From Anthoceros angustus (Eukaryota > Plantae > Anthocerotophyta), in the NCBI GenBank assembly GCA_010909165.1, contig MU008158.1, positions 1,823,478-1,887,477 on the forward strand: a stretch of DNA of 64,000 nt, written 5' to 3'. This document shows positions 2,901 through 64,000 of this stretch, piece by piece. Under the pieces are notes generated by a model that did not search any database, was not told the origin of the DNA, and was given only the letters and a program-made list of their open reading frames with translations. A program made the translations under genes and the position numbers. How positions within the stretch are numbered: position 1 is the first letter of the stretch; each line of letters opens with the position of its first letter.

Positions 2901-3230
2901 GAGAACCTCATTGCCAGCGTCTACCCGGTTTGGCGCAGAGTGAAGGACACGCCATACGTGCTTGAACCTCTTGGCGTGTCTAACAACCGAATCGACGATG
3001 GAGGATTTCGACGAGGAGGAGGAAGACAAGCTAGGGTTGCAACCACCCTCGGAGGAGGTTCTTCAAGTCACCGGAGAGCCGGGTGATCAGAATGAGCCGT
3101 GCAAAAGCGTGGAGGATGGTGCAAGAGGACCAGTGTCCTATGAGCCGGAGAACTCTGAAGTTCTTGCCTAGGGTTGAGCCTGTTGTGACCTAAACACCTG
3201 TGTCATCACATGGCGACCTCGGAAGACGGC

Positions 3231-4110: not shown

Positions 4111-4651
4111 ACCGAGTCGCTACCAACTTCAAACCAAGAAGGCGGGGTTGAAGCGGGTTCGGTGGGTGAAGGATTCCAGACTCGCATCTCAACAGGAGAA
4201 GGCGAGTTTGGAGGGCAAGGAGAGCGAGCACGAGAGGAAGCGTGCAAGCCATCGAGCCACAACCACATGAGTGGTTTGCGCCGAGTTGAAGAGCAATCAA
4301 CGGCGCCTAAAGGAGTTGTTGGAGGCATCGCGACATGTGTTTGCTTTCACGCTATGGAGATGGGGAAGTACACCAAAGGGAAGTTCCACATAGAACTAAT
4401 CAAGAATGAACCAAGGTTCCGCAGGAGGCACTCGAAGGCAAGAAGAAAAAAGCAACCTACTGGGGAGAGTAGTCCACATGAGGCCCATAAGGATATGTCA
4501 AGACAAGCCTCCACTCATGGACAAGGTTCATAACCTGACGACATTCCGAAGGAGATTGGTTTTGTGCACAATGCGCTACATGAGGTGCGACGTGTAGTCC
4601 TACTAATGATAATGTTTTGACTTAGAGTCTCACATTATCGGGGGATTGGTT

Positions 4652-5373: not shown

Positions 5374-5379
5374 ACCTCG

Positions 5380-7800
5380 CATGACAAATTGCGATATAGA
5401 ACCTAAGTAAGCCACAACATATGTATGTATCACATCTTGGATAACGACATATGGTTAAATTAGCATCATTCCGCAAATTTGCGAGTGCGATACGCCCGAC
5501 TTGAACGTGTGATTGTGGATCATACACCCCACCACATGGACAAGAATACCAGTCTTCTTTAGCCCTTAGGCCATCTAAGTATATGCGGTAAGGATGTTTT
5601 TTCTCGATCCATGCCATCGATACATAACAACATGTACTTGTGAGGCTCGGTGTATCCTTTCGCTCGATGTTTTGTCAACTTCTTCCGCCTCCTCCATAAG
5701 CTTTATGCGATGTTTGTTCAACGCGTCCCGATATATATCCGCCTTCAACCAAACATCATGTCGTGTCCATCCATGAAATATAACGCCATGCGCTAACCAG
5801 ACCAACCAACGGAGTTCGACATAACCCGTAGGGGCAAAGGGGCAATAGCATGATGGCAACCCTCGGAAGGGTCATGCCCCCAACAGCGAACCTAGGGATC
5901 CACCCGTTGTATGGCCCAGGCAGATCTAGTGTCCTTAAATCCCATCTGGTAAGGGCGCCGGCTGCCCGCCGGCCCCCTCCCCTACCGCCCCTCAATTACG
6001 GATGTGGCATGCCGGCGCCCTCCCAAGCTCCTTTAGGGTTTAGGGTTACTGCATGTTGCCGCCCTCCTCTCCCCCATTGCACACCCCCTCAACCCACGAG
6101 GGCGCCGGCATGCCGGCGCCCTCCTCCTCTCCCCCTCCCACAACACATGAGGGCACTGCATGCCGGCGTCGAACCCCGCGCCCCCGCCTCCGCAATGAGG
6201 GCCGTGGCATGCCGCCTTCCCTACCTCCTTTAGGGTTTAGGTCCCCGCATGCGCCGCCTCCCTCCGCACACTCCTGCACGCCTCCCTCCCCTCACCCATG
6301 AGGGCGCCGGCATGCCGCGCCTCCTCCTCTCCTCCCACGACCGAGGCGCCGGCATGCCGGCGCCCTCCTCTCTCCCCACTCGATGGCGGCGCGACCGCCC
6401 GCCTTCATCTCAGGGCCGAACCGGTTGTGCCTCGACCAAGGTTCAACCTCCACCATCACAACGCCCACCGTTAGATATCGATGGCCGCCACTTCTAACCT
6501 TTCACCTGCTTATACCATGCCGAAAAACGGTGTGGAGCGATGAGCTTACCTTGATCCGTCTGCGATCCAAAGGTTCAATGTTGAACTTTAGACCGCGCAA
6601 AGAGAACATGATTGGATTTGGGTATCTTCACGCTTGAAGTTCTCGCCCCATAGTCTCGTAAAGTATAATGAAATATCAGCCCTTTTGCTCCATGCCACAT
6701 TTGTATTGTGTCCACACTTCTAGTTTGGTGAAAGTGTCGAAGATTGTAGACTTCAACATTAGGCGCCGCTCGCCAATTGCGTAAATGTTGCATCCATCCA
6801 TGCAATAGCGCCTAATGCATGAGAGGATTTCACCCGGGGCTTGGCTTGCTACAATCCCATGGTGAATTCAAGATCGCCTTCACCTCCTCGCACCTTCCGA
6901 CCCTATGCAATACACCCTTCTGAAGGATTTCAGGCAACACTTGATTGGAACCGGTGCCTTCAGGAAAGTATAGACTTTGTCTTTGCCATTCGACCCATGG
7001 TCAGGTCTTACAAGGGTCTCTAGGAATGTCTCTTGCTCAGACCTTCCCAACCTAAGGAACCTTTGCCTCTCTTCCTGGAAACCCTCCCTCGAAAGTCGTT
7101 GAATACATACTTTGTTGCAACACGGTTTACGGAAATCATCCAGAATTGTGTCCGTCTCAGTCTTCTTCAAGGAGACACCACCGCTACTGCAAACGAAACG
7201 CAAGCTCGTCATAGTCGCAATGTCTCCGACATTGGCTTCGGATGATATGTACACGCAGCCCGTGAGGTGAACGGGAGGGTGGGGAACGTTGTCGTCGCCA
7301 GCAATATCGCTCCCCGATGCACCCAAAACTCCACACGGAGGGCGAAAGAGACCTCTCATTGCTGATGGCTCACTCGAGGGCGGGCGGCATCCTCGCCTCG
7401 GGCTAAGTTCCATAGCCGCATACAAGTTCAAGTTCCGAGGCGCCGGTGGCACATAGGGGTGCACGAAAGGTGATGAGTCCTTCGACCCTCGAGCTCGCAA
7501 GCATGTTTGCCGAATACAAGGTGAAGCTCATCGTCATCCAAAGACGGTGATGATTACCATTGCAAACCCGCATGCCCTGTTGACGGGCGGCTTGAAAACA
7601 TCCGGAACATTTACGAATTATGAAACACGAGCTTTTCAACAAAGACTTAATGTGGTCGCCTCATCGCCGCAAAGTTTGCAAGCGCTTACGGAAATAGATC
7701 GCTGGATGCTCCTTCGTCGCATGCGCGCTGAGTGCAAGACATTACCAAGGGACAAGTTCCTCCCATCTCGCACTGCCGATCAAGATGCATGACACCACGG
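5380..7800 (-). pseudogene. Sola/DUF7869-like DDE transposase, copy A (fragmented)
   Basis: Fragments 'RKPCCNKVCIQRLSREGFQEERQRFLRLGRSEQETFL...CCLKSFRRVYCIGS', 'PNVEVYNL', 'IYRDALNKHR' and 'LRNDANLTIC' match the 58.4-62.2 kb copy in order. Interrupted by a GC-rich intron-like block at ~5850-6480. Confidence 0.7.
5958..6400. repeat. GC-rich block with repeated GCATGC-centred palindromes
   Basis: Perfect 26-bp palindrome GAGGGCGCCGGCATGCCGGCGCCCTC at 6098-6123, plus many variants. Confidence 0.85.
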
Positions 7801-9759
7801 TCGAACAACGACCAAATGGATATACTACATTGAAGGAGGCAATCGCTTTAAGCTACCGTATCCTCATCGGTATGGGTGGAGTGGAGCATGGTGTGTGACG
7901 TCACGTCGCTGAACGCGAACGAGCCACCACAACCAGAGCAACAAACAAGGAGGAGGGCAAATTAGTATGAGACATCGGAGAACAAGCTGGATGCCTTAGC
8001 GTCAATATTTCCAGCATTCACGTGGAGAAGATCTACCTATCAAGTGCCGGATCCGACGCCGCCATTTCAAGCGACATAAATGTTGCGGCCGCTTGGTATC
8101 GGAATCATTTAATGCAGCACGTAACACCACGCTGGAAAACATGGGCACCCGCTTAACGAAACCATGGCAAAGCAAGCGGTGCCGTCAATTAGGGTTCCTA
8201 AAATGGACACTGTCAAACGCGGTGGCGATTACCGCTTTTAACCCGCCCCGACCTTTTAGGCGTTCAACCTTACCGTAATGGAGCGCCCATCACGGCCTAC
8301 ACCGTGTTCACGAAGCGTGAGTTGCGCCCACTTCCGCAAGCGTGAACGCCCGGATTGCGCCGCCCACGCCGCTTGTTCGTGATTTTTGTCAATTGCGCCG
8401 CCGTGACTTCGTGCGCGCGCATCCCGCCTCCTTTTGCATTGAGGGAGAACGGGTAGTCACCGTAATCAATCACCGCTTCGTGCAGGCTATGGCAAGTGGG
8501 CGGCGCAAGAAGGAATTGGCGGATCGAAGAAGAAACCCGCATGTAGACAAACCAAAACGAAAGAGACCAAAAGGGAAGAAGGCGAGCAGCCACGCAAAGG
8601 AGCCGTGTGGAGTGGATGCACACCAAAGTTCGAGCCGACCGGTGTTCCAATTGTGAGCACATTCTTCAAAGGTAACGCCGCCTGATGTCGCAGCGCCCCG
8701 AACTCTCGTGATCCCGCGGTCGGCAAAGGTGAGCAACGAAGGGAGCGGTGAGGGAAATCGAGATGGCCAAGTCACAAAAGCCACCGCCGCGGATTCTAAT
8801 CCTCACCTTTACGCTTGAGGAGACTGCTCAATTGCGCAGACACACTAACCAGATTGATGAGACAATTCTCCGGGAGAAGGACGGCTTGTGACATGAGCGC
8901 AGAGCTCAAGAAGACAATGTGGTGTGGACACCCATGCTGAAATTGTGGATTTATGGCCACAATGGTGCTCAATCGAGAGCTGTATGGGTATGTGGTCCGG
9001 CAACTTTGATAGAAGCGGAAGGAGATCCGGATATTCACGGGTGACTTCAAAGCCTTATGGGTTTGAAGCTTTGCTGGTCGGAAGATTACAGGTTCGTGTT
9101 GAGCATAGGTGCTTGCAGAAAAGTGCGAGCCACGAACCGCCTCTTAAATTCGGAAGCTCTAATCGAGGATTGTAAGTGTGTGTCTTTGGAAGTCATTGAT
9201 TTTGAAGTTTTGGAACATCATTGCATCCACTTAACACTTTTGGCACTTCTAACGCTGTAATGCAAGGAATTTTTATCGATGCTTATGTGAGGTGATTACA
9301 AGTTCTATCATCAATCACCGCCGAGATGTCTTTAGAAGGACCGGCTATCTCGACTATGAACCGAAGGAGATGAGGACGAGGCAGTATGGACCCTCGTGAA
9401 GAGGATGGCCCTATACCGAGCCGCCACGATGATGACGAAATGTCGGAGGAGGACGGTGATAATCCTTGAGGACGGCTGTAACGGAATTTGCTTCCATAAT
9501 GCGGGCATCCATGCGGTGCCCACTATTCCTTCCAATTGATGAGGACATGGGTCAGAATGGAATTGCCCGCAGTGGAGCACATGGAGTTGGGTACCCCACA
9601 GTGCATCGGTTTATATGTGGTATGAAGGCATGGGAGGAGAGGGCGCCGGGCGTGCGCCTTCCTCGGCACAACCGCAGAAGGCATCCAAGTACTATGGGAT
9701 GTGCGGAGGGCACCCAAGTTAGCCGTAACATCCCGAACTAGCCAGCCGGCCGCACTGAG

Positions 9760-12750
9760 GGAGGGCGCCGCATGCCGCGCCGGCCTTGGGACGAGAGGGC
9801 GCGCATGCCGGCGCCCTGGCCTTGGGAGAGGGAGGGCGCGCATGCCGCGCCTCCGCTGGGAGAGAGGGCGCCGGCATGCCGCGCCCGGCCTTGGGACGAG
9901 GGAGGGCGCGGCATGCCGGCCTCCCGCCTTGGGAGGGAGGGCGCCGGCGGCCTGGGAGAGGGCGCATGCCGCGCCCGCCTTGGGAGGGAGGGCGCTGCAT
10001 GCCGCGCCTCCCGGCCTTGGGAGAGGGAGGGCGCCGCATGCCGCGCCGCCAGCCTGGGACAGGGGGCGCCGCATGCCGCGCCCGTGATGCCGGCGATAGT
10101 GGAGGCGATCGGAAGTAGTGGGAAGCGCAAACGGAGTTCGACATATACCGGGTTTGGGGGGGTCAACAAATGTGGAGCCCGAAAGAGATTTGAGAAGGAA
10201 GAAAGGCAAGCGCAGCAGAGCGGCAGACGAACGACATCCGACTATGCATGTCGCGATCGACGGGAGAGGCTGGAGGCCTCCATTCGTGATGAAGATTATT
10301 TTGCGAATATCGAGAGGCATACGCCAAGAAAGTGGTTCCAAAGCCTTATGGGTTTGAAGCTTTGCTGCAATGGAAGATTACAGGTGTTCGTGTTGAGCAT
10401 AGCAGCTTGCAAAGAAAAGTGCGAGCCACGGAACGCTCTTAAATTCCGGAAGCTCTTCGACCAAGGATTGTAAGTGTATGTCTTTGGAAGTCATTGATTT
10501 TGAAGTTTTGGAACATCCTTGCATCCATTTAACACTTTTCGGCACTTCTAACTCTTGGGCAGAATGCAAGGAATTTTTATCGATGCTTATGTGAGGTGAT
10601 TACAAGTTCTATCATCAATCACCGTCGGGAGATGTCTTTTAGAAGGACCAGGGCTGGGCTATCTGACTATGAACTGGAAGGAGATGAGGACGAGGCAGAG
10701 TATGGACCCTCAGGTGAAGAGGATGGCCCTATACCGGAGCTGCTTGGCCAGACAGATGACGAAATGTCGGAGGAGGACGGTGATAACAGCCTTGAGGACG
10801 ACAGAATGGAATTTGCTTCCATAATGCCTGGGGCATCCATGCTGGTGCCCACTATTCCTTCCAATCCAGATGAGGACATGGGTCGCAGTGGGAATTGCCC
10901 GCAGTGGGAGGCCATGGAGTTGGGCATACAGAATCGGTTTATATCGGTATGAAGGCATGGAGGAGAGGAAGGGCGCCGGCATGCCGCGCCTCGGCACAAC
11001 CGCAGAAGGCATCCAAGTACTATGGGATGTGCGGAGGGCACCCAAGCAGCTGACTGCCGGAACCAGCCCGCCGGCGGCCGGAGGGAGGGCGCCGCATGCC
11101 GCGCCCGCCTTGGGACGAGGAGGGCGCATGCCGCGCCGGTGGCCTTGGGACGAGGGAGGGCGCGCATGCCGCGCCCGGCCTTGGGACGAGGAGGGCGCCG
11201 CATGCCGCCTCACCGGCCTTGGGACGAGGGAGGGCGCCGGCATGCCGGCGCCTGTGCCTTGGGAGGGAGGCGCCGCATGCCGCGCCCGGGAGAGGCGCTG
11301 CATGCCGCGCCCGGCCTTGGGAGGGAGGCGCCGCATGCCGCCTCCCGGCCTTGGGAAGCAGAGGGCGCGCATGCCGCGCCAGCCTGGGAGAGGGAGGCGC
11401 CGGCATGCCGGCGCCCTCCGTGATGCTGATGATAGTGGAGGCGTATCGGGAGGTAGTGGGAAGCGCAAACGGAGTTCGACATATGCAGCTGGTTTGGGGG
11501 GCAGGTCAACAAATGTGGAGCCCGAAAGAGATTTGAGAAGGAAGAAAGGCAAGCGCGCAGCAGGAGCGGCAGACAACAACGACATCCCGACTATGCATGT
11601 CGCGACTGACGGGGAGAGGCTGGAGGCCTCCATTCAGGATGAAGATTATTTGCGGAGTATCAGAGAGGCAGCATACGTGAAGAAAGTGGTTCAAACAGTT
11701 CTTCCGAAATTAGAGAATTTAAGGCTGCATCCTTTCTTTCTCCGGATGCATGATTCGGATTGTGGATGAAGCTTGGACCAACTACCCTCGAGTCATTTCG
11801 AAAGGTAGAGTGGAGGAAGGTGTCCTGCCTCATGCATGATTGACCCAGGAGTGCCGACATTCAATCTATAGATCGGATAAGTTTAGAGCCAAGAAGTATG
11901 TCATGGGAGTGCTCGTGGCAATCACACCTAAACGATGAAGCATCCGGACATATCTCCATCAAGGCCGATACCAATGGATGGAAGCCCATGTGTATTGTGG
12001 GCTCACTTTACCGAGATGAGGGTTCGCCACCGACCACAACACTATGTCGACAAACGGAAGATGAATTTCATTGAGCAAGTAAGGTACTTGCGAGATGAGT
12101 TGCAGATTGCAAAGAGAGTTGGTGTCAATATGAGCATGAACTGGAAGTTCAACCTGTATAAGGTGCTAGGCTTGATAGATGATGATGAGGCCAGAGAGGA
12201 TGAGCAGTACAAGCAAAACAAGGTCGACAATCGCACACATATCCTTTGCATCGCCAAACTGGAAGGGAGAGTGTGGGAAAATGTTGATAAGATCTTCACG
12301 AAGTGGGAGGCCATGGAGTTGCCAGAACAAGCCAAACATGTTGCCGCAGAAGGCATCCAAGTACTATGGGATGTGCGGAGGGCACCCAAGGTTAGCGAAC
12401 ATCGGGAACTAGCCGTGGCCGGCCTCAGCGGAGAGGCGCCGGCATGCCGCGCCTCCCGGCCTTGGGACGAGAGGGCGCCGGCATCTCGGGGCGAAGAGGG
12501 CGGCATGCCGGCGCCCTCGGCCTTGGGAGCGGCATGCCGCGCCCGCTGGCCTTGGGAGAGGGCGCCGGCATGCCGCGCCAGCCTGGGACGAGGGAGGCGG
12601 CATGCGCCTCCTCCTTGGGAGGGAGGGCGCCGGCATGCCGCGCCTCCGCTGGGAGAGGGCGCCGGCATGCCGCGCCTCCCGGCCTTGGGAGGAGGGCGCG
12701 GCATGCCGGCGCCAGCCTGGGACACAGGAGGGCGCCGGCATGCCGCGCCC
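9760..12750. repeat. Three copies of a GC-rich minisatellite (9760-10090, 11070-11420, 12430-12750) built from CCTTGGGA(C/G)AGGGAGGGCGCCG(G)CATGCCG(G)CGCC units
   Basis: Direct inspection; same palindromic core as 5958-6400. Confidence 0.85.
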
Positions 12751-14329
12751 GTGATGCCGATAGTGGGCGTGTCGGAAGTAGTGGGAAGCGCAAACGGAGT
12801 TCGACATATCTGGTTTGGGGGCGGGTCAACAAATGTGGAGCCCGAAAGAGATTTGAGAAGGAAGAAAGGCAAGCGCAGCAGAGCGCACGACATCCGACTA
12901 TGCATGTCGGGGGAGAGGCTGGAGGCCTCCATTCGTGATGAAGATTATTTTGCGAATATCGAGAGGCAAGATACGCCAAGAAAGTGGTTGGAAGCAGTTC
13001 TTGAAATTAGAGAATTTAAGGCTGCATCCTTTCTTTCTCCGGATGCAGATTCGGATTGTGGATGAAGCTTGGACCAACTACGGCTCGAGTCATTTCGAAA
13101 GGTAGAGTGGAGGAAGGTGTCTGCCTCTACTATGCATGATTGACCAGGTGACATTCAATCTATAGGCGATAAGTTTAGAGCCAAGAAGTATGTCATGGGA
13201 GTGCTCGGTGGCAATCACACCTATGCAGCGATGAAGCATCCGGACATATCTCCATCAAGGCCGGATACCAATGGATGGAAGCCCATGTGTATTGTGGGCT
13301 CACTTTACGAGATGAGGGTTGCCACGACCACAACACTATGTCGACAAGCGGAGATGAATTTCATTGAGCAAGTAAGGTACTTGCGAGATGAGTTAATTGC
13401 AAAGAGAGATGGTGTCAATATGAGCATGAACGGAAGTTCAACTGTATAAGGTGCTAGGCTTGATAGATGATGATGAGGCCGGAGAGGATGAGCGACAAGC
13501 AAAACAAGGTCGACAATCGCACATATCCTTTGCATCGCCAAACTTGAGGGAGAGTGTGGGAAAATGTTGATAAGATCTTCACGAAGTGGGAGGCCATGGA
13601 GTTGCGAACAAGCCAAACATGTTCTGCGAACAAGCAAGAAAAGCAAGGGGAAACGGAAGATCGCAGATGAGGCGAAGTCGGTGGACCAAAGTTTGTGAAG
13701 CCAAAAGACATGCAAGGAAGCCTTGGCGAAGTTTTGGTATTCCACCGGGTGAGAGGCCAAAAGACATGCAAGGAAGCCTTGGCGAAGTTTTGGTATTCCA
13801 CCGGGTGAGGCGGCCAAAAATGTTGATCGTGTCACCGAGAAGGTCTGACAGTCTCATAGACCTCAATGGTATGGCCAAAGAGATCACTCTTGGAAGAAAC
13901 TACATGTGATCCAAGTGGCTATGGCGAAGCATCTAGGCTGCAATTCATTCGAGATGGTGAGGAAGGAGTACCTGCACTCAACGGATGAAGTCATTGCGAT
14001 TTCGCACCGCTCAAGGGAAGGTGAGTTTCTGCTCTTACCAAGATAGAACTATAAGAGGGCGCCGGCATGCCCTCCCTATTGTCCCCGCAATCGACTTTCG
14101 CAACCTCACTTGTTTTGTGTTATTTTGCAGCAAGTTAAAGATGTTGAAGACCAAAAGCTACTAAGATTTCCGTGCTTTTATATTAGAGGTCCACACATGG
14201 AAAGGGCTGGAGGATGAGCAGAGGGCACTTGGACATGGACATGGAGGAAGGGCTGCAATCATCGCGTGCCCAAAACAGGAGGAGTTAGTGAAGTATCAAG
14301 TGGTGCGCAGATGTGGCGTAAATGAGAGG

Positions 14330-14935
14330 GTTTCTTTGGAGTCAAGTATACAACTGGTGATGGATGTCCCTGTGGGATTCAACAAGGGAAGTATGATGTC
14401 AAACTTGAGCAAAGCAAATGGCAAACATATTTCATTCCTTCCATGACATGACAATGTGCGACGAGATCGAATGATAGTAATGCATGGTGTGGAAGAGCGC
14501 ATATTGTCGTGAGAGTATGAGGAAGTGGTGTGTGGAGGCATGGTCTCATTTGTTTGGGACAAAACTAATATGCACAATGACCAAGGAGGCTTTGACATCG
14601 TGGAGTACATCATCGTGGGGTGTGACCGCACGAGCAAGAAGACAAAGGTGTCCATGTCAATACCTTGCGTGGCTCTTTCAATAATGGGCGAGCTTATTGC
14701 ACACGACGGTGAAGAAGTTATTATACATGTCGGACAAGCGGTTGTTTCCGCATCGAGGCCACCGGGTCTAATGATGAAGTTGATCAAGAACTTCTCCAGA
14801 GAAGGAGATTGGATATTAGATGCATGCGTGAGTGGAACAACGACATTAGCGGCACTCCTTTGTGGCCGAAATTGCATTGCCGTGGAGGTTGACAAACGCT
14901 GCGTAGTTCATTCCGCAAAGGATTCATGGCTATGA
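14330..14935 (+). pseudogene. Beta-class N4-cytosine/N6-adenine DNA methyltransferase domain (N6_N4_Mtase-like), copy A
   Basis: Motif IV-like QLVMDVPVGFN (14351-14383), SFVWDKTN, VEYIIVG, then RPPGLMMKLIKNFSREGDWILDACVSGTTTLAALLCGRNCIAVEVD. This resembles KP..L..LI..S.EGD.VLDPF.GSGTT..AA...GR..I..E.D, with catalytic motif before the SAM-binding motif (beta permutation). Confidence 0.8.
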
Positions 14936-15642
14936 AGTTTTACCGGACGCAGAGGAGGAGTTGACCCATGAGCCACACCGCCGAGGCCCCACCCACCTGG
15001 GCAAAAGAATTGAGCTTGTCCGAGAAGGATGCATCCCAGGCCCAGGTAGTCCCACTTGGGTTGAGCAGGATGAAAGAGAAGACTGGAGATCTTATAGATG
15101 ATCGCCAGCAAACCCTGTCTGCATTGTGGCATCCTGACTATTTGGAGAAGAGCAAGGAGGATTCGGTCGATATCGCCGGAAATGCTATGGTCGAAAACGA
15201 CAATTTCGAGGATCCCGAGGATGCTCGACTCCGAAGGACAGAAGTTGTGTTAGATAGCGTGTCGGGACAATGCCCTCCGGAGCCACAGTCTCAAGCCGAG
15301 AATCCCCCTCAGTAGGGAAGTGAGTCTAGTTTAGTTTTGAAAGTTCCATAACCAATGGTTAGAATTAAGACAGGCCGCATGCCGGCCCGTTCCTCCTTCT
15401 TTAACTATGAGTGACATTGTTATTCGCTTTGTCAAGGATGACTTCGCTGACGGCTGCAAAATATCCAGACCTCGCTTTCACACCTATAAGATATCTGCCG
15501 TAACTGCACGAGAGGTCCGAATGCACCAACATACCCACATTCGTGAAAGCACCACAAACGGGATGCGCAAAACTCAAGCACTAAACTTGCATCACGGACT
15601 GGATGGGGAACCCAATTTGGTCCCGGGTTTTCAAAGCGGGTT

Positions 15643-15674
15643 CGTATATTCCGCGGTTCAAATATTATGGTGTT
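15643..15674 (+). repeat. Terminal inverted repeat of copy A (second, duplicated instance at ~16747-16777)
   Basis: CGTATATTCCGCGGTTCAAATATTATGGTGTT; outer 18 bp identical to the TIR of element 53139-62729. Confidence 0.8.
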
Positions 15675-52794: not shown

Positions 52795-53138
52795 TGTGGT
52801 CTTCCACAACGCCCAACTGGCTACTGCCCTTGATTCCATGACAAGCTCACTAGCTAGCTCTCCACAGCTCTCTCAACACAAGGCTTGCAACGCACACTTG
52901 CCTGCTCTCTGGAAGAGTGAGTCCCACTTGTTCCTCAAAGCCCTTGCTCTAGCCCTTATATATCCACTGACCTTAACTAGGCGGTGTTAAATCTAGGGAT
53001 TCTTACAGACCACTAATCACTAAGAGTCCTCTCTAGGCAGCTCTTCATTTGTGGCTGTAGCAATTCCTCTCTAACAAGAGATTGCATGAAGTATGCAACA
53101 TATGCATCTTCTTAACATGCCAGCTACTAACTTAGCTT
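52795..53138 (-). mobile_element. Distal part of the 3' LTR of the Gypsy element at 62730-64000, separated from it by the DNA transposon insertion
   Basis: Rejoining across the GCTT TSD gives a continuous LTR-like sequence with TATATAAGG (52955-52963, minus) ending ...GAAGACCACA. Confidence 0.55.
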
Positions 53139-53171
53139 AACACCATAATATTTGAAGCGGCTGAATATACA
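53139..53171 (+). repeat. Left TIR
   Basis: AACACCATAATATTTGAAGCGGCTGAATATACA = exact reverse complement of 62697-62729. Confidence 0.95.
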
Positions 53172-53469
53172 AACCCTCTTCCGCAAATCAGAAACCCTCA
53201 TGTTCAAATCTTGACAGTACCTATAATACATGATTAAGCATGATTTGATTCTAAGGGGATGGGTGTTATGTCATCTCAATGCAATTTCCGCATTAGTTAA
53301 ATCGCCTCTAGTTATGGTGGTTGCCTTGAAATAGGCGTTTTGGACGAAGCCGTTAAAGGCTTTTGAAGGTGAAGGCGCGCATGCGCATGCGCCCACCGCT
53401 CAAATCGTTACACATAAAACTTTCAACCCATGAAACAAAGAAATCGTACCTACTCGCATCACAAAACAA

Positions 53470-56400
53470 GGCTGGGACTCAGGCACCGCCTGACACGCCA
53501 TCCATGACTACTTCTACGGTCTTGACGCGCATGATCTGGGTCTTCAAAGTTGTCGTTCTCCTCCATGATATTTCACGTGTCCGAGGAGCCACCTCCACAA
53601 CGATGGCTTGTCTGCTGGAGGCCACACCGTGTCCAATGTTTGCTGCCCAACGTCAAGGATCTCTGATCGGCGCTTTCCTCCTGGAAGACCCCAAAGAAAC
53701 AACTTGAGCTTGTGACAAACCTTTTTCCGACAATGTCACTTCTTTAGCCTGAATCGGACCACGGCGGTGAGGCTCGTGGGTCAACTCCTCATCGGCGTCC
53801 GCAAAACTTCATATCCATGGATCCTCCGATGTATGAACTCTGCGCGTTGTCCACATCCACGGAATGCAATTCCGACCGCATAGGAGAGCGACCATCGTTG
53901 TCGATCCACTTCGCACATGCGTCTAAAATCCAATCTCCTCCTTCGAGAAGTTTTTGATGATTCTCATCATCAGGCCCAATGGCCTCTGATACGCACACAC
54001 CACCAGTTTATCGAGGGATGTGTATAGCAGCTTCTTCACGACAGTGTCATGCCCAATGACTGCACGTCCGTTGTTGAAGGAACCCTGGACATTATTGGGG
54101 AGCATGGAAATTTTGGCCAGCCTGCTGTGCGATGTTAAGCCCCACCCAACTGTAATGTATTCCACAGTGTCGTAGCCCCCTAGGTCGTTCTGCATATTAG
54201 TCTTGTCCCATACAAATGACACCAACCCTCCCCCAGTGCACCACTTCCGCATTGCCTCCCTCACTGTGTGGTGCTCCTCCACACCGTGCATGACTATCAT
54301 CCGTATCTCATCGCAACTTGTCATATCATGGAAAGCATGGAAAACCGCATACCGCCGCAGCCATAGTGACATCATGTTTTCCTTGTTAAATCCTCGGGGC
54401 ACATCCATGACCATCAATGTGTATTTCGAATCCAGAAGCCCCTCATGTCAACGATATCCCTTGCCATAACTGGTACTTCACAATATTCTCTGTTCGAACT
54501 GTGAAAGATTGCAGGCCTTCTTCCATGTCCATGTCCGCCATAGCCCTCTGCTCCTCCTCCAAGCCTTTCCAAGTGTGCACTTCAAGCACAAAAGCTTGAA
54601 AAGCGTCAGTAGTTTCTTCAGTCATCCACATCCTTTACTTGTCAGAACGACAAAGATTATGTCAATATAGCAGACGGACATTCAATGGAAGGACATTCCT
54701 CACGGGACAAAGGCATATTGGAAGATGGCGGGCGCCGGCATGCGGCGCCGATCGTCGCCATTCTGAGACAACTCGAATGGGAGGCGTGGCGCCGGCATGC
54801 CGCCATTAAGAGTCCTCAAGTCTATCACGGACTTGGAGGCTGCTGGACCGGGCGCCGGCATGCGGCGCCGGCATGCGGCGCCCCATTCGGCAACGAAGTG
54901 CGAGAGCACCGGGCGCCGCATGCGCGCCGGCGCCGCCCGCATCTGCTTCGAATGGGAGGCGGCGGCATGCGGCGTCGATGCCCCTCAGGAAAGCAAACCG
55001 AGGTGGGCGGCATGCCCTCTCTGCTAACAGAATGGAGGATAAAAGACACCTACCTTTCCCTCAAACGCCGTTTGAAATCTTGCGATGACCTCGTCCGTAG
55101 AGTGTTGAGGATATTCTTGCCGGACTTGGTCGAATGAGTCACACCCCAAGTGTTTGGCCATCGCCACCTGAATCACATGAAACTTCTTCCTCAGGGTGAT
55201 TTCCTTCGCCATCCCATTGAGGTCCAGAAGCCGTCAAAACCTTCTCTGTTGCACTTATCAACATTTGTTGCCCACTTTCCCCAGGTGGGATGCCTTGAAA
55301 ACTCCTCCAAGGCTTGCCTTGCATCTCTTTAGGCTTCAACAATGCGCCATCCCCTGCCTTCGGGTCATCAGTGACTTTACGTTTGCCCTTGCTCTTCTTG
55401 CTTGTGCCTGCTGCAACATGTTTCGCCTGTTCCGGCAACTCCATGGACTCCCACTTGCTGAATATCTTGTCCACATTCGCCCACACTTTGCCTTCCAACC
55501 GAGATGCATAGAATGTGGGTCCTGTTGTCTACCTTGTTCTGCTTTATCCGCTCCCTCGCGGCCTTCGTCGTCGATCGCCCAAGCACCTTGTACAAGTTGA
55601 ATTTCCAGTTCATGGTCATGTTGATACCATCCCTCTTCGCGATTTGCAGCTCATCTCTCAAATACCTCACCTGCTCAATAAAATTCATCTTCCGCCTCTT
55701 GTCGGACATGGTGTTGTGGTCAGTGGCTAAGACTCTCATTTCCGGAATAGTCAGACCACAATACACATGAGCCTCAATCCACTGGAGGCTTGCCTTCCCG
55801 AGTGATATGTCCGCAAGGTGTCTTTGCATTGCATATGTATGGTTTCCTCAAGCACTCCCATCACATATTTTTAGCCACGAACTTCGCCAATCCAAATGAC
55901 TTGATATCATTGCATTACGGATCAATCATGCAAAGCGAGGCAAGACTCCTTCCTCGATTCTCCCTTTGAAATCACCACAGCTAGGTAGTTCGTCAAGCCT
56001 CGTCCACTTTTCGGATCCGGGCATGAGTCGGAAAGAAGCGGTCTCAAGTATTCCAAACCAACCGGTTTAACCACTTTCTTCCCATATGCGGCTTCTCTAA
56101 TCTTCAAATAATCCTCATCCAACGACGCCTCAACCTTTCTTCATCGATCGACACATGAAGTGTAGGAATATCTTGGATGGCGATGGCTTGCCCATCATTG
56201 TGCCTTTCTTCCTCCCCATGGTATGCGCTGGTTCCCCTCGCTCGATCACATCCGCGGGTGCTGCTGCCTGTAACATCCGAGGATACTCGGGCACCACCTG
56301 TATAACATCATGGGCGCCGCATGCCGCGCCTTCTTCCTCCCGGCCGTCCGCACTGCGCTGACGCTGCATGCCCACTGCCCCTTCCTCCTACCGGCTGTTC

Positions 56401-57500
56401 CCACTCCCACATGACCCTTGGTTGGCTCCGATTCCAAAGACCTGCGTCTCCATATGTCGGGTGCCGCTTTCCCATGAAGGCACATCAGGCGCCGGCATGC
56501 CGGCGCCTTCTTCGACCGCTTGTCCAGCAAAACCAAGACACTTGGGGTGCCCACCACGCATGGCATGGAGGGCGCCGGCATGCGCCCTCTCCCCCTCCTC
56601 GTCGTCCCGGCGTATGCTGCAGGCTGTGAGCCGGAGGTTCGAGAAAGTCCATGATGATATCCGCCTCCTTCATGCATCTTCCTTCGGACCCGCCCGCATC
56701 CATTGTCCAGTACATCCGGTATAGGGCCATCTTCCTCGTCGGGAGCCCGCTCGCATCAACATGAGGAGGGTATCGGTCCTCAATTGCGAACTCGGCGGCT
56801 CTTGTTCTTCGGAAAGACATCTCCCTCCTGTGATTAATCACAGACTCTGTGATGACCCCACAGAGGCATCTGTAGAACAGTCTTCCTGGCTGCAAACAAT
56901 AGTGTTGAAATGTCAGATATCAGGATGGGGGAGGAAAGGTGCGAAGTGAATTTGAAGGCCTAAGTGGCCACTGACCGGTTTCCGCGTAGGCTTTCTCGAA
57001 ATTGCATTGCCAGCTCCTTTGGTTCACATTTCTTCGCTTGAAAGCCATCTATCCTGAAGAGGAACACCTTGTAATCATCTGGGGTGTGCGGCAAATTATC
57101 AACGCCATAGGGTCTTGATGTGCAGAGCACTTGCACCTCCGGATGCAATGTGTCCATCTCCAAACTTGCCCACAATACCCATCCGGCTCTTGAGCATTGG
57201 GCGAGCCCTGTAGCTGTAACCCACAACTTCAACAGGGGGGTCCAGATTGCCCCATCTTCCTGTGGCTCACTTGCAGGTTAGAAACCATTCTTTGTCCAAT
57301 GCCGCAGCTTTCCTCAACTGGCTTGTGTGTCTCCGCAGTAGCACTGTCTCCTCATACGTGTATGGCGATGGATTGGGCTCTGGGGTGCTCTTCTTTTTGC
57401 TCCGAGACATTCCACTCTTCTCCTCTGTTCCTCCATGCGCTTTGGTGCTGCTGTCTTTTGCTGAATTCAGAGACCCAGCCTTCCGAACACCCTGTACAGG
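53470..57500 (-). pseudogene. Transposon cargo gene, copy B (ParB/Srx-like GGNH domain + N4/N6 MTase), fragmented
   Basis: TSRPYG..DDYKVFL, MSFRRTRA, DEDYLKIREAAY, KYVMGVL(G)GNHTYAMQRH (~55815-55875), KMNFIEQVRYLRDELQIAKR, VWANVDKIFSKWESMELPEQAKHV, MTase, ENDNFEDPD; colinear with copy A. 5' limit approximate. Confidence 0.7.
53790..54420 (-). pseudogene. Beta-class N4/N6 DNA methyltransferase domain, copy B
   Basis: LMVMDVPRGFN...SFVWDKTN..VEYITVG...YQRPLGLMMRIIKNFSKE (ORF 53923-54417), then after single-base slips GDWILDACA(G)SGSTTMVALLCGRNCI.VDVD. Confidence 0.8.
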
Positions 57501-58399
57501 AGTTAAAAAGCACGGGAAAAGATGGATTCAGTTGACACCAACATGCCCTGGAAAAACGCTCACCGGCAATGGAGATTCGGCAACGCATCTCCCGCGCCTT
57601 CTTCGCCTTCACCACAATCCGGGGTTGTCGGCATGCCCAGTCTTTCTTGCTACGCCGTCCACTCGCCATAATCCGCACTTAATCGTGAACGCACACTGTG
57701 GCCGTGAGTTGGAGCAAAAGCGATTGCCACAATACCTTCGATTTCGCCCGATGATCGCCTCTAGCCCATGCGTCGCGCCAATCGCCCACCAGATGGGATT
57801 AGCGCCGAATTGGGCGAGTTGCGCCAAGGTGCCAGGCCGCGATGGTGTGCTTCCGCTGTGGATTACGCCCGCCAGCCCTCCGTGAGCACTCCGTCGAGCT
57901 TCACCTGCAAGAAACGCGTATGACGGGGCTCCTCTCGAAGTTATACCCTTTTTAGAAGCGGACATCCGTAAGAAACCCTAATGTGGTGACGGCCGTCGAA
58001 ATATAGACCACTGCCAATATTTAAACCCCAATACCTGTCTTATTTATACGGATATGACACTATCTCGATCATTACATCGTTATATCACAATAAATGCAAT
58101 CTATTTTCACTGGATATCCTCGCCGCCACCGAACCATCGATGCAATGGCGGCGGCGGGTGAGTCGGTAGGCATGTCTTATGCCCTCTTAATTGAATAGCG
58201 CCGGTGTTGGGGCGGCAATAAGAGGGAGGTTTGGGTGGTTGAAGACCCATCCGGTATGTTCCAAGCTTGATGTTCGTTGCGCTTTTGCCGATCGTCTAAG
58301 TCGCCAAGATGCGCATTCTATCCATGGCTTGGACGAGGATGAGGTATTCTCTGAAGTCGACCTGGTGATCATTTACGCTACGAATGTGGAAAGTCATTG

Positions 58400-61300
58400 C
58401 ACGTCTGCTTTGTTCTAACGCTCCGTTGCGGAGGTCCTTGTTCATGGAGTCCGTGGGTGCAACAAGGTCCCTTCTCATTCATGCAGAGAAGAAGAAGGTC
58501 TTGGAAGGACGGAAGGAACTCAGCGGCACCATCGCTACGCCCTAACTCAAGCCCGCACTCCCTACTAGAAGGTCATTTCTTTGATACCCACTCCATGCCT
58601 TTGCAAGACCAAATGTCACAATGGCTGGATCCGTGTATGGTTCACATTTTCTTGTTTGACTTGAATAGCAAGGTGTCACAAACGCGTAGAAATGGTGCTT
58701 AATCGTGCTTTGTTCCATGGGATGAAACCGATGGTCTTCCTTTGCGGGGCTAGGAGAACACACGCATCGACCAATGTAGGAATACACAGATTTGCCACCT
58801 ACTCCCGGAACTTGAATAGGTGTGTGTGGGTGGAAGCCTGTGTCGGAGGGAGAAAGGTCGTCGACAAATCCAGCCTCCCAAGGGATCGGATCGGATGTCG
58901 CGCGCGTAACACCATGGTGGGCGGCAGTTCATTCCGTTGATGTGCCGCATACACCTCGGAGGAAGCGAAATGGTGTCTCTTATCACCGCGATGAGTCGAC
59001 AATGCGTGAGACGAATGTTTTGCCGATTCAAAGAGGCGCGCAGTGTCTCTTCTGGAAACCCAGCGGCCGTGATGGCGACGGCCATCTTGCCGCAACAAGT
59101 TGTGTCTTCCTATTTTGTCAAGGGATGGTCTTGAGCAGAGGACAAGGTTCTTGAGGCTAGGCAGCAGAGAGTTATTCCTTCAATCTCTTGTTAGACCGGA
59201 TGTGAATGCCAAATGCGAGACAAGGTTGTCACCTACATTATGGGAGAGCCCCGCGCTGTTGTTCTGAAAGCATTTCGTCGAGTTCTCGCATAGGCTCGCA
59301 AGATACGACGAGTTGAAGAGTGGTCTGAACGCACCTTGGGATGGGGCCAAGCAATCCTCGTGTGCAATCCTCACATGCTCTTCGCGATCGCGTGGATGGA
59401 CTCAACATTTCTTGTTGGCGAAAGGTTGCCCAACGTTGAAGTGTACAACCTTCCGGACACATTCACTAAACTTGAGGTTTGGAATCGATTATCACCGACA
59501 TGGAACAAGTGGGCTGCGGTTTGTGTCATATGCATATTTCCGAGGCTATGGACGAGAAAATTTTAAGAGGGTGAAAATTCAAGTCCAACGGTTTCGACAT
59601 GCGCGCGTGGTTGAAGTACAACATCCGAGTACGGGTCATCGGATTGATCAAGGTATACCGTTCTCCGTCATTTCGCATAGAATCTTGTAATAGGTATCAT
59701 ACTCTTCCGGAGAGCTAACCCTCTAACGTAGCCGCCGTAGATGCAAAGGCGAATCACCGCCCTAGCTTCCACGGCGAGCCCATGTTGGAGCCATGGAATG
59801 AAGGGCGACAGATGCCGGTTTGAGGAAGTGCGCCGACGCAGCGCCGAGAGACCGGGCGTGGCCGGAGGGCGGCGCTGCATGCCGGCGATGCCAAGTCCGG
59901 GGCCGGGAGAGGGGCCGAGTGCCGCGCCTCTAGGGCGCCGATGCGTCTGGAGGCGCATGCCTCGCCGCAGCCGCACGCGATGGGCGCGGAAGTGCGGCGC
60001 CGGCCGCCCCTACCCACCGGTCGGCGCCCCGACCGGATGGGAGGCCGGCAGCCGGCCGGTCGGGCCGGTGCGCACCCACGGCTCACCGGGCATTCAGCGC
60101 ACCGGATGGGGGCCGGCGGCGTCGATGGGCGCGGGCACCCACCGGCCGCGGCATCCACACCGGATGGGAGGCCGGCAGCGGGCGCCGAGCGCGCCGACCC
60201 ACCGGCACGGCCCTACATCCGACGGATGGGAGGGCGCAGCGGCGCCCGGTCGGCGGCGGCGGCATGCCGCGCCTCGGTTATAGGCCGCCAAGAGTCTCTC
60301 GCATAGTTGCACACCGGATGGGGCGCGAGCCTTCCTCCGCCTGTCATGCCTATGCCGTGAATGATATTGGCACGCGGGTGCCTCGATGACATGTTTCCGC
60401 ATGGTTGGGGAATAAAATGTTTGTATTTTTGAATGGGCTAACCCATTGTGGAACTAACTCATTGTCCTTTCTAATCGGTTCGGTCTTGTGTTTAGCGATG
60501 TATATCGACGCTTTAAATAAACATCGAACAATTGATGAACGAGAGGAAGAAGTTGATGAAGCATCGCACTAAAAGCCGTCTCTAAATACATATTACTATG
60601 CATTGATGGATGGAAGAAGACGAGTTGCCGCATATTTTGAGATGGTCAAGGACTCAAGGAGGATCGCTGCATAGCACCACAGGGCTGCATGGTACACAAT
60701 TATACTTTGAAAGCCGGGCGTATCTCACTTTGCGAACTGAGGAATGATGCAAACTTGACTATTGCTATTATTCGTGACGTTATCCACACGTATAATGGGT
60801 TCCTTCCGAAAATTCTATATTTGCTGGATAACACATGCCGGGAGAATAAGAACCAGCTTTTATGCACCTCAATATGCTTGTTGAGGTGGGCACCTTTGAA
60901 AAGGTGAAGGTCGGATTTCTCCTCGAGGGCATACACACGACCAAGTGGACCAGATGTTCTCTTGCTTTTCTAAACATCCAAGCACAAGGAGGTGAAAACC
61001 CTACCTATGGATGGAACCTTGATAAGCAACAGATACGCCCAACCCGGAGGTTCGGTGTTGACCGAGGTTCCGATTTTGACGTATGTCCGGCCTATAACAA
61101 AGGGCGGGATATCAAGATAAGGCGCAGTGAAACAATTGAACAATCTATCGCTTTCAACATCGTTCAAAATCACACGAGAGGAGAAATCGAATCGTGGAAA
61201 GTAGATCCGAGTAAGCGTGATTCAACCTCTCCTCGTGGGAGTCAAGATGGCTTGGAGTTCTCGACGTTTGTTCCACAATGATATTAGCCCGGCACCTTTG

Positions 61301-62250
61301 ATGGCGCCCAAGCCAAGGACAAAAGAGGTGGTGTTGCGGGGATGACGCTATTCAGGGGTTGCTTACATGGAAAGGAATGCTAAATCTACCAACATATGTC
61401 AATGAGAAGAAGAACAATGGTGGACAATGTTCGAAGGATCGAGGAGATTGCATGTATCGAGACAACAATATTGGTCTTGTCTGGAAAAACCATGGAAGTG
61501 GTAATGACAGAAAGCCGACGAACTCACTCCACCTCCGTGGGGGGTTGTTGTTCTAGATGAAGCATTGTTATGGAGATTCCCCAAAGGGACATGTACTTAG
61601 GACCCCACCGTGGTGATCGTCAAGGACAAGAGTGTGAAAGGATGAATGGGGATATCATGGAGATAGAGAAAGGCATGTTCATTATAACGCCTTGTGAGGG
61701 TGACATACACAATGAGCTTTCGGCTCGCAAAGGTTGTGGAAGTCCATTTCACCCGATCCTTACTTACTTGTGCATTGGTGGAGGATGACCACAGACGATA
61801 CGAAGGGAAGTATATGGCGGAAGTCATCCTCGAGTTGAGAACAAGGCCACACCCGAAAAGGAAGAGGGCAAACAACACAATCCACCTAATATACGTGTTA
61901 TTCGCTCGGAAAACGTTATCGCTTATTATGGGTTCAAGCCGAACGCAAGGAAACATCAGACGCCGACAAGAAAGCGATCAAAGAGAAGATGAGTGCTCTG
62001 AGCCCACCTCAAGCCTCGCAACCCCGGATGGTGTAATGGATGCGATGAATCAGCGACGGCCGACATATCTGGCGGGAGGACTCGAGTCAGCGAGGAATGA
62101 TCGGAATATGTGCCTTGTTCCGAACGGGTTTGCAAGGTGCCTTGTCCACGCCCACTGGAGGAAGCAACTTTTGTTCATTTTGTATGTTCGCGATCCCCGT
62201 CGGCAAATGACTAGTCCTCTAAGGCCGCATGCGCTTAAACTGCTTTGAAG
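58400..62250 (+). pseudogene. Sola/DUF7869-like DDE transposase, copy B (fragmented, intron-like GC block at ~59710-60420)
   Basis: Cys-rich 'SCRNKLCLPILSRDGLEQRTRFLRLG', 'PNVEVYNLP', catalytic-type 'LRNDANLTIAII..LY/LDNTCRENKN..VKVGFLL.G/HTHDQVDQMFS' (60735-60965), and a C-terminal 'GMFIITP..FRLAKVVEV' segment. Confidence 0.75.
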
Positions 62251-62696
62251 AAGTGAGTCCTGTTGGCATCGAAAGTCATTCAACGCGCGCACACGCCCGC
62301 TCGACAAGTCCTTCTGGGCGGACGTGCGCCGGCATGCCGCCGGATCGTTTCTTCCGCTCGTCCTTTTAACCCTATCGTTGTTCAAAACCTCGTCCACCAT
62401 GTGCATATATGGGTGTATAGCAAGAGAGTATACATATGTGTACGCATTCCTCCAAAGGGGCCCTGTGGGTCGCTCGGTCATTAACGGATCCTAATCGTAT
62501 CGCATGGTCTAAGGACATGGGCATCGTTTCTAGCAAAAACAATGCTCGTGCGATTAGGCGCTTCCCTTCTGTGCGTCATATAGCATGTATAGGCGGTCAC
62601 GACACCCTTATTCATGCCATCTTCGTGTATGCTCAAATATGGCTGCCGATACCCATCGAAAACCACGTTGCCGTCAGATATTCAGGTGCCGCTTCA

Positions 62697-62729
62697 TGTA
62701 TATTCAGCCGCTTCAAATATTATGGTGTT
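62697..62729 (-). repeat. Right TIR
   Basis: TGTATATTCAGCCGCTTCAAATATTATGGTGTT, preceded by a subterminal partial repeat TATTCAGGTGCCGCTTCA. Confidence 0.95.
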
Positions 62730-64000
62730 GCTTTTTATCTTTTTCAACTTTTCACCTTTCTACCTTATTTCACCAGTGCCGTTACTCTCTCCCCCACTGG
62801 GAAGATGTCATTGTCCTCAATGACCTCTAGTGTAACGCGAGATCATCCATGATCCTTGTTGCACATCTTCAAGTGAAACCCAGACAGGATCTGCATAACC
62901 ACGAAGCCTTACCAGATACTCTGGTACATTACCACGGACAATAGGCGCTTCTCTCTCTGCCAGGAATTCAACAATCTCCCGCAGACCATGATTGTATTGA
63001 ACCAGGATGACATAATCCTTCCTGTTCATATCTTCATTCTCTTTCGAAATCACAAATGGTTTCAGCAAAGAGACATGAAAGGTGCATTAGTGAGTCCAAA
63101 TGGCATGACAAGGAACTCAAAAGATCCACACCTTGTTCTACAAGCAGTCTTGTATTCATGTCCTTCTACGATGCGAATCTGGTAATAGCCTGCCATTAGA
63201 TCCAGCTTGGTGAAATACTTAGCACCTCTCAATCTGTCAAACAAGTCATCCATCCTTGGTAAAGGATAAGAATTCTTCATCATTATCCGATTGAGTGCTG
63301 TAATCCAAGCATAATCTCAATCCTCCATTCTTCTGCGTGAACAACAGGCGCACCAAATGGGGACTTTGAGATTCTCACATAGCCCTTGGCTGTTAGACAT
63401 CTGTCTCTTGCCTCTTGTAGCTCATCCTGCGATAATCTATATGGCGCTCTTAAAGGCGGTGTACTTCCTGGCTTGAGATCAATCTCATGATCTACAATTC
63501 TTGTAGGAGGTAAAGGAGGCAACTCATCGGCATCAAGTCCTTGAACTCATTCAAGAGCACTTCCTTGAATCACGCCCCGAGACTCCATCTCAAGACCATC
63601 TTCTAGTCCTTGCAAGACAAGTAAAAAGAGTTCCTCTCCATCCTTTACACAACATTTGAGCTCTTTCTTAGAGATGATATCATCAATGTTGTCTCCAAGC
63701 CTCGCTTGAGAACGCACAACTCACTTTGTGCTCTTCATCTCCTAAGATCTCGTATGGTGAGTCCACGCTCACACATACCTTGTTGGCCTTCATCCATTCT
63801 AAGCCCAAGATGATTTCATGATCATCCATATCTACAACCGTGAAGCTCACCGCCCATTCCAATTCCCTATCTCGCACTTTGCAATTCACCTTGTGTTGCA
63901 AAGATTCCTTTAGCTTGTTTCACTCTACATGGCTCGATGTACTAGCCCATGTCAAACCAAGCTTGCTTGCCTTGCTAGGAGAAATGAAATTATGTGTTGC
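62730..64000 (-). mobile_element. Internally deleted Ty3/Gypsy chromovirus: protease-RT start joined to chromodomain, PPT, start of 3' LTR
   Basis: ATHNFIS..DMDDHEIILGLEWM (protease), [62 protein letters not shown] (RT), then 'EIVEFLAER..EYLVRLRGYADPVWV' (chromodomain), PPT-like AGTGGGGGAGAGA (~62786-62798) and LTR start GTAAC. Confidence 0.85.

Follow-up and report, generated by a model that had tools for sequence, protein, structure and literature searches.

The closest described counterpart of the element considered here comes from the brown alga Ectocarpus, in which Sola1-1_Ec32, a giant Sola-1 DNA transposon, carries an accessory gene transcribed opposite the transposase (Genome Biol 2025, PMC12477816). 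Its authors propose that the encoded protein binds and modifies its own element (PMC12477816). The element examined in this work lies in a 64,000-nucleotide stretch of the Anthoceros angustus genome (assembly GCA_010909165.1, contig MU008158.1, positions 1,823,478 to 1,887,477, forward strand), referred to below as the window, where it occupies positions 53139-62729 (9,591 bp; copy 1). It is very probably a structurally complete, coding-dead cut-and-paste transposon of the DUF7869 (Sola1-type) class residing in a land-plant genome, from a family whose autonomous members have a transposase gene and a gene for a protein that joins a ParB-like domain to a methyltransferase (MTase). Copy 1 and Sola1-1_Ec32 have the same gene-pair architecture when compared by description; one belongs to a stramenopile, measures 21.5 kb and encodes a 1104-aa protein, whereas the other belongs to a land plant and measures 9.6 kb. 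The initial annotation of the window knew of no description of this architecture and allowed that an existing one would remove its novelty. Ectocarpus Sola1-1_Ec32 has been described with exactly such a gene pair (PMC12477816), and that qualification therefore applies: the kind of element is already known, and what is new is the host record. The idea that such an element labels itself was likewise published already for the brown alga. The locus adds that the family also occurs in the streptophyte line (Chara, Ginkgo and Anthoceros angustus) and that the accessory gene was under selection over a long divergence.

Several other systems share parts of this plan. Phages and prophages have ParB–methyltransferase genes (ParB-Tls loci; Iyer et al. 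2016, PMC4738411). These show the same domain pairing as the accessory gene in the window and are likely its ultimate source, but they are prokaryotic and intron-less, have canonical DPPY-type motifs and are thought to serve phage DNA modification and packaging. In the red alga Bostrychia, Plavaka elements (EnSpm/CACTA-like) carry the transposable element (TE) accessory genes PAG2 and PAG3 (bioRxiv 10.1101/2025.02.11.637652). As in the window, an accessory protein with a ParB-like N-terminal domain is found near tandem inverted-repeat arrays, and a self-targeting hypothesis has been proposed; Plavaka also has a separate N6-adenine MTase-like accessory gene. However, Plavaka belongs to another superfamily, with ParB fused to a 2-oxoglutarate oxygenase and the MTase fused to a SET domain. 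Retrotransposons carry MTases as well, Gypsy-DNMT3 in streptophytes and DAM-type enzymes in diverse retrotransposons (bioRxiv 10.64898/2026.05.21.726589). They resemble the family in the window in that a TE has its own DNA-modifying enzyme and differ from it in being Class I elements, with a C5 or an alpha/gamma-class Dam enzyme inside the polyprotein. Finally, the N4-methylcytosine (4mC) writers MpDN4MT1a/b of Marchantia and N4CMT of bdelloids share the beta-class PF01555-type fold with the MTase family in the window but belong to the host and are not carried by TEs. A connection with Marchantia DN4MT1 was rejected, as MpDN4MT1 has a TSPPY motif and is without a ParB-like domain, none being mentioned in its paper.

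The ends of copy 1 are sharply defined. The two arms of its terminal inverted repeat (TIR) are complementary at 33 of 33 positions (100%), and GCTT lies on both sides as a putative target-site duplication (TSD), exactly as the initial annotation had read them; the chance of a 4-bp flank match alone is 1/256. The terminal features are as follows.

53135..53138, no strand: left putative TSD copy, GCTT, read from the sequence and abutting the left TIR
53139..53171, plus strand: left TIR, 33 nt, beginning AACACC and pairing fully with 62697-62729
62697..62729, minus strand: right TIR, 33 nt, the complement of the left arm
62730..62733, no strand: right putative TSD copy, GCTT, read from the sequence and abutting the right TIR

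An AACAC terminus is common to copy 1, to a second and diverged family member in the window (copy 2) and to an element on an 8.9-kb environmental contig (L002). Sola elements reportedly have a 4-bp TSD.

Inside the TIRs of copy 1, the transposase gene is on the plus strand.

59073..61280, plus strand: transposase pseudogene, with an N-terminal Cys-rich segment at 59073-59264 and a DUF7869 DDE/D core at 60641-60992 spread over three frames

The translation of 60641-60904(+) matches Pfam DUF7869 (E=3e-11, 43.7 bits against a cut-off of 26), and the assignment also draws on phmmer with the L002 transposase and on tblastx to copy 2. The MDG, LLDNT and GHTHDQVDQ motifs align with the intact L002 transposase. 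The cut-and-paste element first proposed for this locus is thus borne out by its TIRs and a DUF7869/Sola-type transposase, the suggested profile check having given a match above the Pfam cut-off. The equation of DUF7869 with Sola1 follows the class assigned in print to an element of like architecture (PMC12477816). A feature-based Atlas search finds DUF7869 clusters spread across eukaryotes. The two strings that had first suggested a DDE transposase, LLDNTCRENKNQ and GHTHDQVDQMFS, are both present, although they stand in different frames: the catalytic core of copy 1 reads LLDNTCRENKNQ in a first frame, VKVGFLLEG in a second and GHTHDQVDQMFS in a third. The transposase of an intact relative reads …LDNTTKENKN…LLVGHTHEDIDQMFS… in one frame, and comparison with it reveals two or more frameshifts in the copy 1 core. 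BLASTP gave no significant similarity between the N-terminal transposase segment of copy 2 and a 385-aa open reading frame (ORF) of L002.

The accessory gene is on the minus strand, divergent from the transposase gene, and consists of several segments.

53500..57277, minus strand: ParB-like/beta-class amino-methyltransferase pseudogene, multi-segment, with stops, frameshifts and probable introns
55380..55847, minus strand: ParB/Srx-like segment (GNHTYA ... YCGLT ... HN ... FIEQVRY), profile positions 185-262, E=1e-9
55027..55233, minus strand: conserved middle region, profile positions 397-453, E=5.5e-8
53926..54447, minus strand: MTase domain, running from VMDVPRGF (motif IV) as far as the YQRP block that precedes motif I; matched at E=4.8e-15 by profile positions 533-695 and backed by alignments
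53790..53960, minus strand: MTase motif-I region, which binds S-adenosylmethionine (AdoMet), frameshifted by three 1-bp indels relative to copy 2

The profile behind these values was built from relatives only (Chara braunii, Ginkgo and environmental members), with no window sequence in it, and was run on all 1,875 six-frame fragments of the window. Its matches in copy 1 are collinear, it also matches 14513-14932 in copy 2 (E=6e-13), and among the 1,875 fragments it has no match outside copy 1 and copy 2. The recognition of the pseudogene rests further on protein segments conserved with copy 2 and on the selection signal described below (pN/pS 0.22). The ParB/Srx-like segment aligns with the N-terminal domains of Chara and Ginkgo, and the middle region has 81% amino-acid identity between copy 1 and copy 2 over its best 26-residue block. 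Searched alone, the MTase and ParB pieces of copy 1 had no match in Pfam (PF01555 included), NCBIfam or PDB sequences. The PF01555 check that the initial annotation suggested was therefore negative for copy 1 and positive for copy 2, whose piece at 14513-14932 passes the N6_N4_Mtase cut-off (E=1.6e-8, 35.2 bits against 26.7) at the motif-I end of the profile. That piece reads …RPPGLMMKLIKNFSREGDWILDACVSGTTTLAALLCGRNCIAVEVD… and has weak PDB sequence matches to CcrM, M.MboIIA and DpnA.

The motifs quoted from copy 1 at the outset need some correction. GNHTYA is there, but the first residue position of the reported GGNHTYA is a stop (*GNHTYA); copy 2 reads VLGGNHTYAA. A region homologous to the reported motif-I string is likewise present, although it is readable only by hopping frames, because of the three 1-bp indels relative to copy 2. 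The identity of the divergent second gene as a member of a ParB-like plus beta-class MTase family was upheld by the profile of relatives and by fold models.

For the MTase domain, the closest intact relative (P0001) was modelled with a predicted local distance difference test score (pLDDT) of 82.9 and a predicted template modelling score (pTM) of 0.83. Its best fold matches are CcrM (template modelling score, TM, 0.72), M.MboIIA, M.BceJIV, M1.HpyAVI and M.RsrI, all beta-class N6-adenine enzymes; N4-cytosine enzymes come lower, with M.PvuII at rank 24 and bdelloid N4CMT at rank 29 (TM 0.64). The beta permutation is present, D-x-P-x-G (motif IV) coming first and QKP ... LD.CSGSGTG (motif I) last. 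The best viral profile matches of the domain are the phage DNA-MTase families phrog_67 and phrog_498, with E down to 1.5e-27. By fold and ancestry, the domain belongs to the PF01555 beta-class family; its enzyme activity is uncertain.

The N-terminal domain of the environmental relative P0018 was modelled from an alignment of nine sequences, two of them pieces from the window (pLDDT 80.6). Each of the 50 PDB matches listed is to ParB, Noc, KorB, PadC, Srx or a protein without characterisation, Atu1540 (best E=4.7e-4), and each of the 30 Swiss-Prot matches listed is to ParB, Noc or KorB; the TM by target against Srx is 0.62-0.67. A profile of the domain matched nothing relevant among PDB sequences. 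The label ParB-like is used because the fold and the GG(G/N)H block agree, not on account of a sequence profile, and a ParB/Srx-like fold for the N-terminal domain of the accessory family is supported by the model.

Relatives of the two genes were found well beyond the window. A profile made from two MTase-piece sequences, run against 1.84 billion representatives, retrieved 75 proteins, about a dozen of which span the whole domain; these whole-domain relatives carry PF01555, with E as low as 7.6e-18, and Gb_37443 of Ginkgo biloba is one relative. A profile of full-length members found at least 11 paralogues in Chara braunii, several of them named 'DNA methylase N-4/N-6 domain-containing'. The Chara ParB-MTases (among them CBR_g66820 and CBR_g3587) and Ginkgo Gb_37443 are direct homologues over the ParB-like, middle and MTase regions; they are annotated as hypothetical or as 'DNA methylase N-4/N-6 domain', and no paper was found that calls them TE genes. 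A homologue search with single-domain regions of P0018 returned only near-identical proteins, Chara proteins or matches of P0018's own, with no Ectocarpus and no liverwort protein among them.

Two relatives preserve the gene pair. The environmental contig L002 holds a complete element with 28-nt TIRs at 20-47 and 8844-8871 that are 96% complementary and begin AACAC, and inside them are a DUF7869 transposase (minus strand) and a 789-aa ParB-MTase (plus strand). Its flanks, ATGG at 16-19 and GATA at 8872-8875, form no 4-bp duplication; GATAT occurs on both sides with a 2-bp offset. In Chara braunii, locus L005 has a transposase at ~5581-8088 (minus strand) head-to-head with an accessory gene at ~13807-16048 (plus strand), the same arrangement with a DUF7869 transposase as in the window. 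The 574-nt 'inverted repeats' flanking the locus were tried as TIRs and rejected, being microsatellites beside assembly gaps. At another Chara locus (L004, BFEA01000077.1), the full-length ParB-MTase CBR_g66820 has no DUF7869 transposase detected within 10 kb on either side, and this copy may be non-autonomous or domesticated. A low-coverage DNA run gave short high-depth contigs, 85-99% identical, restricted to the TIR end and to conserved exons, a pattern that marks a multi-copy family.

Copy 2 gives a direct view of how the accessory gene has evolved.

5375..15674, minus strand: copy 2, a diverged family member inverted relative to copy 1, with the transposase side truncated (blastn 70-73% identity)

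The blastn identity of the two copies applies to the coding parts. The MTase-side TIR of copy 2, at 15634-15674, matches the copy 1 terminus, and its MTase pieces are at 14165-14443 and 14513-14932 on the plus strand. Across 341 aligned codons from sense-frame tblastx blocks of copy 1 against copy 2, differences at codon positions 1, 2 and 3 amount to 20.5%, 18.5% and 53.4% (chi-square p=4e-19). Read in the sense frame, these blocks give a ratio of nonsynonymous to synonymous differences (pN/pS) of 0.22; read in the two shifted frames, they give 1.20 and 1.39. Blocks picked by protein similarity bias this figure, but the shifted-frame control still shows a real signal. The accessory gene was therefore under purifying selection while the lineages of copies 1 and 2 diverged, each copy decaying afterwards.

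Two further features of copy 2 concern its local rearrangement. Its ParB-like exon block is duplicated internally together with a palindrome array (11637-12349 and 13058-13755). Its MTase-side terminus is duplicated ~1.1 kb downstream along with the outside flank (CTAGTTGCGG…), at 15400-15720 and 16500-16820. The third terminus so produced, at 16738-16777, was rejected as a separate insertion: it shares the outside flank of the copy 2 end and is therefore a local tandem duplication, not an independent insertion.

Several points count against the identification as set out so far. The Sola1 label rests on DUF7869, a 4-bp TSD and a published class of like architecture. The TSD is backed by one copy, since the ATGG and GATA flanks of L002 differ and copy 2 has one end only. 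The P0018 N-terminal fold has a low TM, 0.3-0.4, against full ParB; neither the window pieces nor P0018 match Pfam ParBc (PF02195), so that the suggested ParB/Srx sequence-profile check came out negative for the window, and a weak DUF6551 match (E=0.0097) is found in Ginkgo only. In the MTase domain, DVPRG and DVPVG depart from (D/N/S)PP(Y/F/W) in lacking both its second proline and its aromatic residue, and motif I of copy 2 is short by one residue.

Both copies in the window contain internal palindrome arrays. With up to two mismatches, GCCGGCATGCCGGC occurs 21 times against 0.4 expected, and with up to three mismatches GGCGCCGCATGCCGCGCC occurs 33 times against 0.04 expected, in each case entirely within copy 1 or copy 2. 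The arrays are located as follows.

54700..55000, no strand: decayed GC-rich palindrome array of the GGCGCCGCATGCCGCGCC type, between accessory-gene exons of copy 1
56250..56650, no strand: second palindrome array, within the 5' portion of the copy 1 accessory gene
59750..60300, no strand: third palindrome array, in the gap that separates the N-terminal transposase segment of copy 1 from its DUF7869 core
5950-6400, 9750-10150, 10975-11420 and 12430-12750: well-preserved palindrome arrays of copy 2

The palindromes of copy 2 are in tandem units of ~35 bp. Array positions correspond between the two copies: arrays are found in the gap between the transposase N-terminal segment and DUF7869 and, within the accessory gene, in its 5' part and in an intron; the third array is at a position equivalent to 5950-6400 in copy 2 and to 2254-2373 in L002. 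The latter element has its own 17-mer, ACCGATAGCGATATACG, of unrelated sequence, with seven occurrences against 0.01 expected, in both orientations and including one clean palindrome. Its sites (2254-2373, 3613-3642 and 5676-5930) fall within the intron of the transposase gene and a short distance upstream of the ParB-MTase gene. The arrays of Chara L005 are between the two genes, upstream of the ParB-MTase, and include a palindromic 31-bp unit. The array sequences thus differ between lineages while the layout is similar.

We infer that the arrays are candidate binding sites of the ParB-like domain; that the domain actually binds them is a reasonable possibility held at a little less than even confidence. 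A serious competing explanation, which we would likewise place somewhat below an even chance, is that the arrays are unrelated to this domain and are subterminal repeats bound by the transposase, a promoter or enhancer of the divergent genes or a hitch-hiking minisatellite. Their location, partly intronic and partly in the central region that should hold the promoters, fits such roles, as does the lack of sequence relationship in the arrays of L002 and L005. However, the positions are kept between copies that are ~70% identical and in a distant relative, and a sequence that changes with the lineage is what co-evolving binding sites should show. ParB proteins bind inverted repeats, often arrayed, which also speaks for the ParB-like domain as the reader of the arrays, and a like idea has been raised for red-algal Plavaka PAG3.

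Motif IV bears on whether the MTase-like domain acts as an enzyme. The catalytic tetrapeptide (D/N/S)-P-P-(Y/F/W) occurs nowhere in the close family; the readings at this motif are as follows.

Copy 1: DVPR (DVPRG)
Copy 2: DVPV (DVPVG)
Two closest relatives, P0001 and P0005: DLPR (DLPRG)
Ginkgo: DIPH (DIPHG)
Chara and L002: DFPY (D-F-P-Y-G)
Several environmental members: DIPY
One distant match only: DPPY (DPPYG)

In beta-class enzymes of solved structure, the aromatic residue of motif IV stacks against the target base, and because this residue has been lost in the plant clade, methyl-transfer activity is uncertain; real methyl transfer in this plant lineage seems doubtful, though far from negligible. 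If the enzyme is active, N6-methyladenine (6mA) is the likelier product, as Asp comes first in motif IV and the nearest folds are N6-adenine enzymes, and methyl transfer would accordingly be more likely to fall on N6-adenine than on N4-cytosine. This does not favour the 4mC writer at first suspected: DVPRG and DVPVG contrast with TSPPY in Marchantia DN4MT1, and the nearest solved folds are those of N6-adenine enzymes.

It may instead be, and we hold this tentatively, that the MTase-like module of the plant lineage is a pseudo-enzyme that keeps the fold, and maybe AdoMet or DNA binding, with no methyl transfer, so that the accessory protein would be a DNA-binding or bridging factor. The clade's DVPRG, DVPVG, DLPRG and DIPHG, with the base-stacking aromatic residue lost, agree with such a loss of catalysis, whereas Chara and L002 keep D-F-P-Y-G. 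Yet purifying selection acted on the domain in its entirety, QKP/QRP and motif-I blocks included, the modelled fold is that of a compact and confident MTase (pTM 0.83), and other MTases can be active with non-canonical catalytic loops. The altered catalytic loop of the plant clade turns 'writer or pseudo-enzyme?' into a concrete question.

These parts can be put together in a model of what intact members might do. Autonomous members carry two head-to-head genes, one for a DDE/D transposase and one for an accessory protein with a ParB/Srx-like DNA-binding N-terminal domain, a conserved middle region and a C-terminal PF01555 amino-MTase fold of the prokaryote/phage type. In such members, the ParB-like domain would dock the accessory protein on the element's own palindrome arrays, and the docked MTase module would then mark or occupy the DNA of the element. 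The outcome could be a tuning of the divergent promoters or of transposition, or a shielding of the element from host silencing. In its full form, the proposal is that Sola-type elements of streptophytes and land plants carry a self-addressed epigenetic module, an array-reading ParB-like domain joined to either the writer of an unusual mark or a non-catalytic DNA clamp, and we regard this as unlikely on balance. Under this proposal, the arrays would be lineage-specific in sequence and fixed in place, sitting within the intron of the transposase gene and either inside the accessory gene or upstream of it. The catalytic loop would have started as DPPY and changed by way of D-[FI]-P-Y into D-[VL]-P-R.

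The candidate target arrays inside the elements make the self-targeting hypothesis directly testable. A transposon that encodes a protein able to bind and modify DNA could use it for labelling, protection or regulation of its own sequence, apart from the host 5-methylcytosine machinery, and it could be a source of domesticated amino-methyltransferases. If the self-addressed module is real, the transposon would in effect supply a plant genome with a cis-acting system, chromatin-based or partition-like, that belongs to the element.

Copy 1 itself is a fossil: judged from the assembled sequence, both of its genes are dead and it encodes nothing functional, contrary to the initial annotation, in which it carries its own DNA-marking enzyme. 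Having intact TIRs, it could at most be moved in trans by a working transposase. It is very improbable that copy 1 is instead intact and potentially active, its frameshifts being indel errors of a long-read assembly. Perfect TIRs and a preserved TSD would suit an intact element, and in the DNA run about half of the related contig depth has one more C following 53936, the site of a frame-breaking deletion in copy 1; that base would remove one frameshift. The C-bearing contigs, however, are 85-99% identical pieces of other copies and do not come from the copy 1 locus; the extra C of other copies therefore leaves this lesion as either specific to copy 1 or an assembly error. Moreover, both genes have many lesions, including in-frame stops and multi-base indels, and the window also contains two pentatricopeptide repeat (PPR) genes, 1232 and 947 codons long, that run without interruption, which makes pervasive assembly indels unlikely.

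DNA transposons often capture host gene fragments, and a ParB-MTase gene with no role in the transposon, either picked up passively as in a Pack-TE or forming part of another element nested inside this one, would agree with that habit and with the Chara L004 gene that has no transposase detected within 10 kb. This is nevertheless the least credible of the explanations, given that a single TIR pair encloses the head-to-head genes both in the window and in L002, that the gene pair recurs in Chara L005 and is described for Ectocarpus, and that the accessory gene was held by purifying selection while the lineages in the window diverged by ~30% in DNA.

Two uninterrupted PLS-class PPR genes with E motifs are at 29604-33302 (minus strand) and 33740-36583 (plus strand), and their 312-bp tandem periodicity stems from the P-L-S repeat triplets. 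PLS-E PPR proteins are specific to land plants, and the two intact genes support the land-plant host assumed from the start. A quick Pfam scan of only the ATG/GTG/TTG-started ORFs at 1799-4533 did not recover the C5-MTase that had first been noted inside a Gypsy-like pol at 3231-4110, which is no refutation of one. Immediately to the right of the element is a Ty3/Gypsy-type reverse-transcriptase fragment at 63062-63522 (minus strand), with an RVT_1 match (E=3.4e-9) at 63062-63283. Short tandem arrays of a 19-21-bp unit (…GGGTCTGTGTGGCCC…) are found at 16520-16627, 17614-17729, 18752-18855 and 51462-51516 and apparently stem from another dispersed repeat family.

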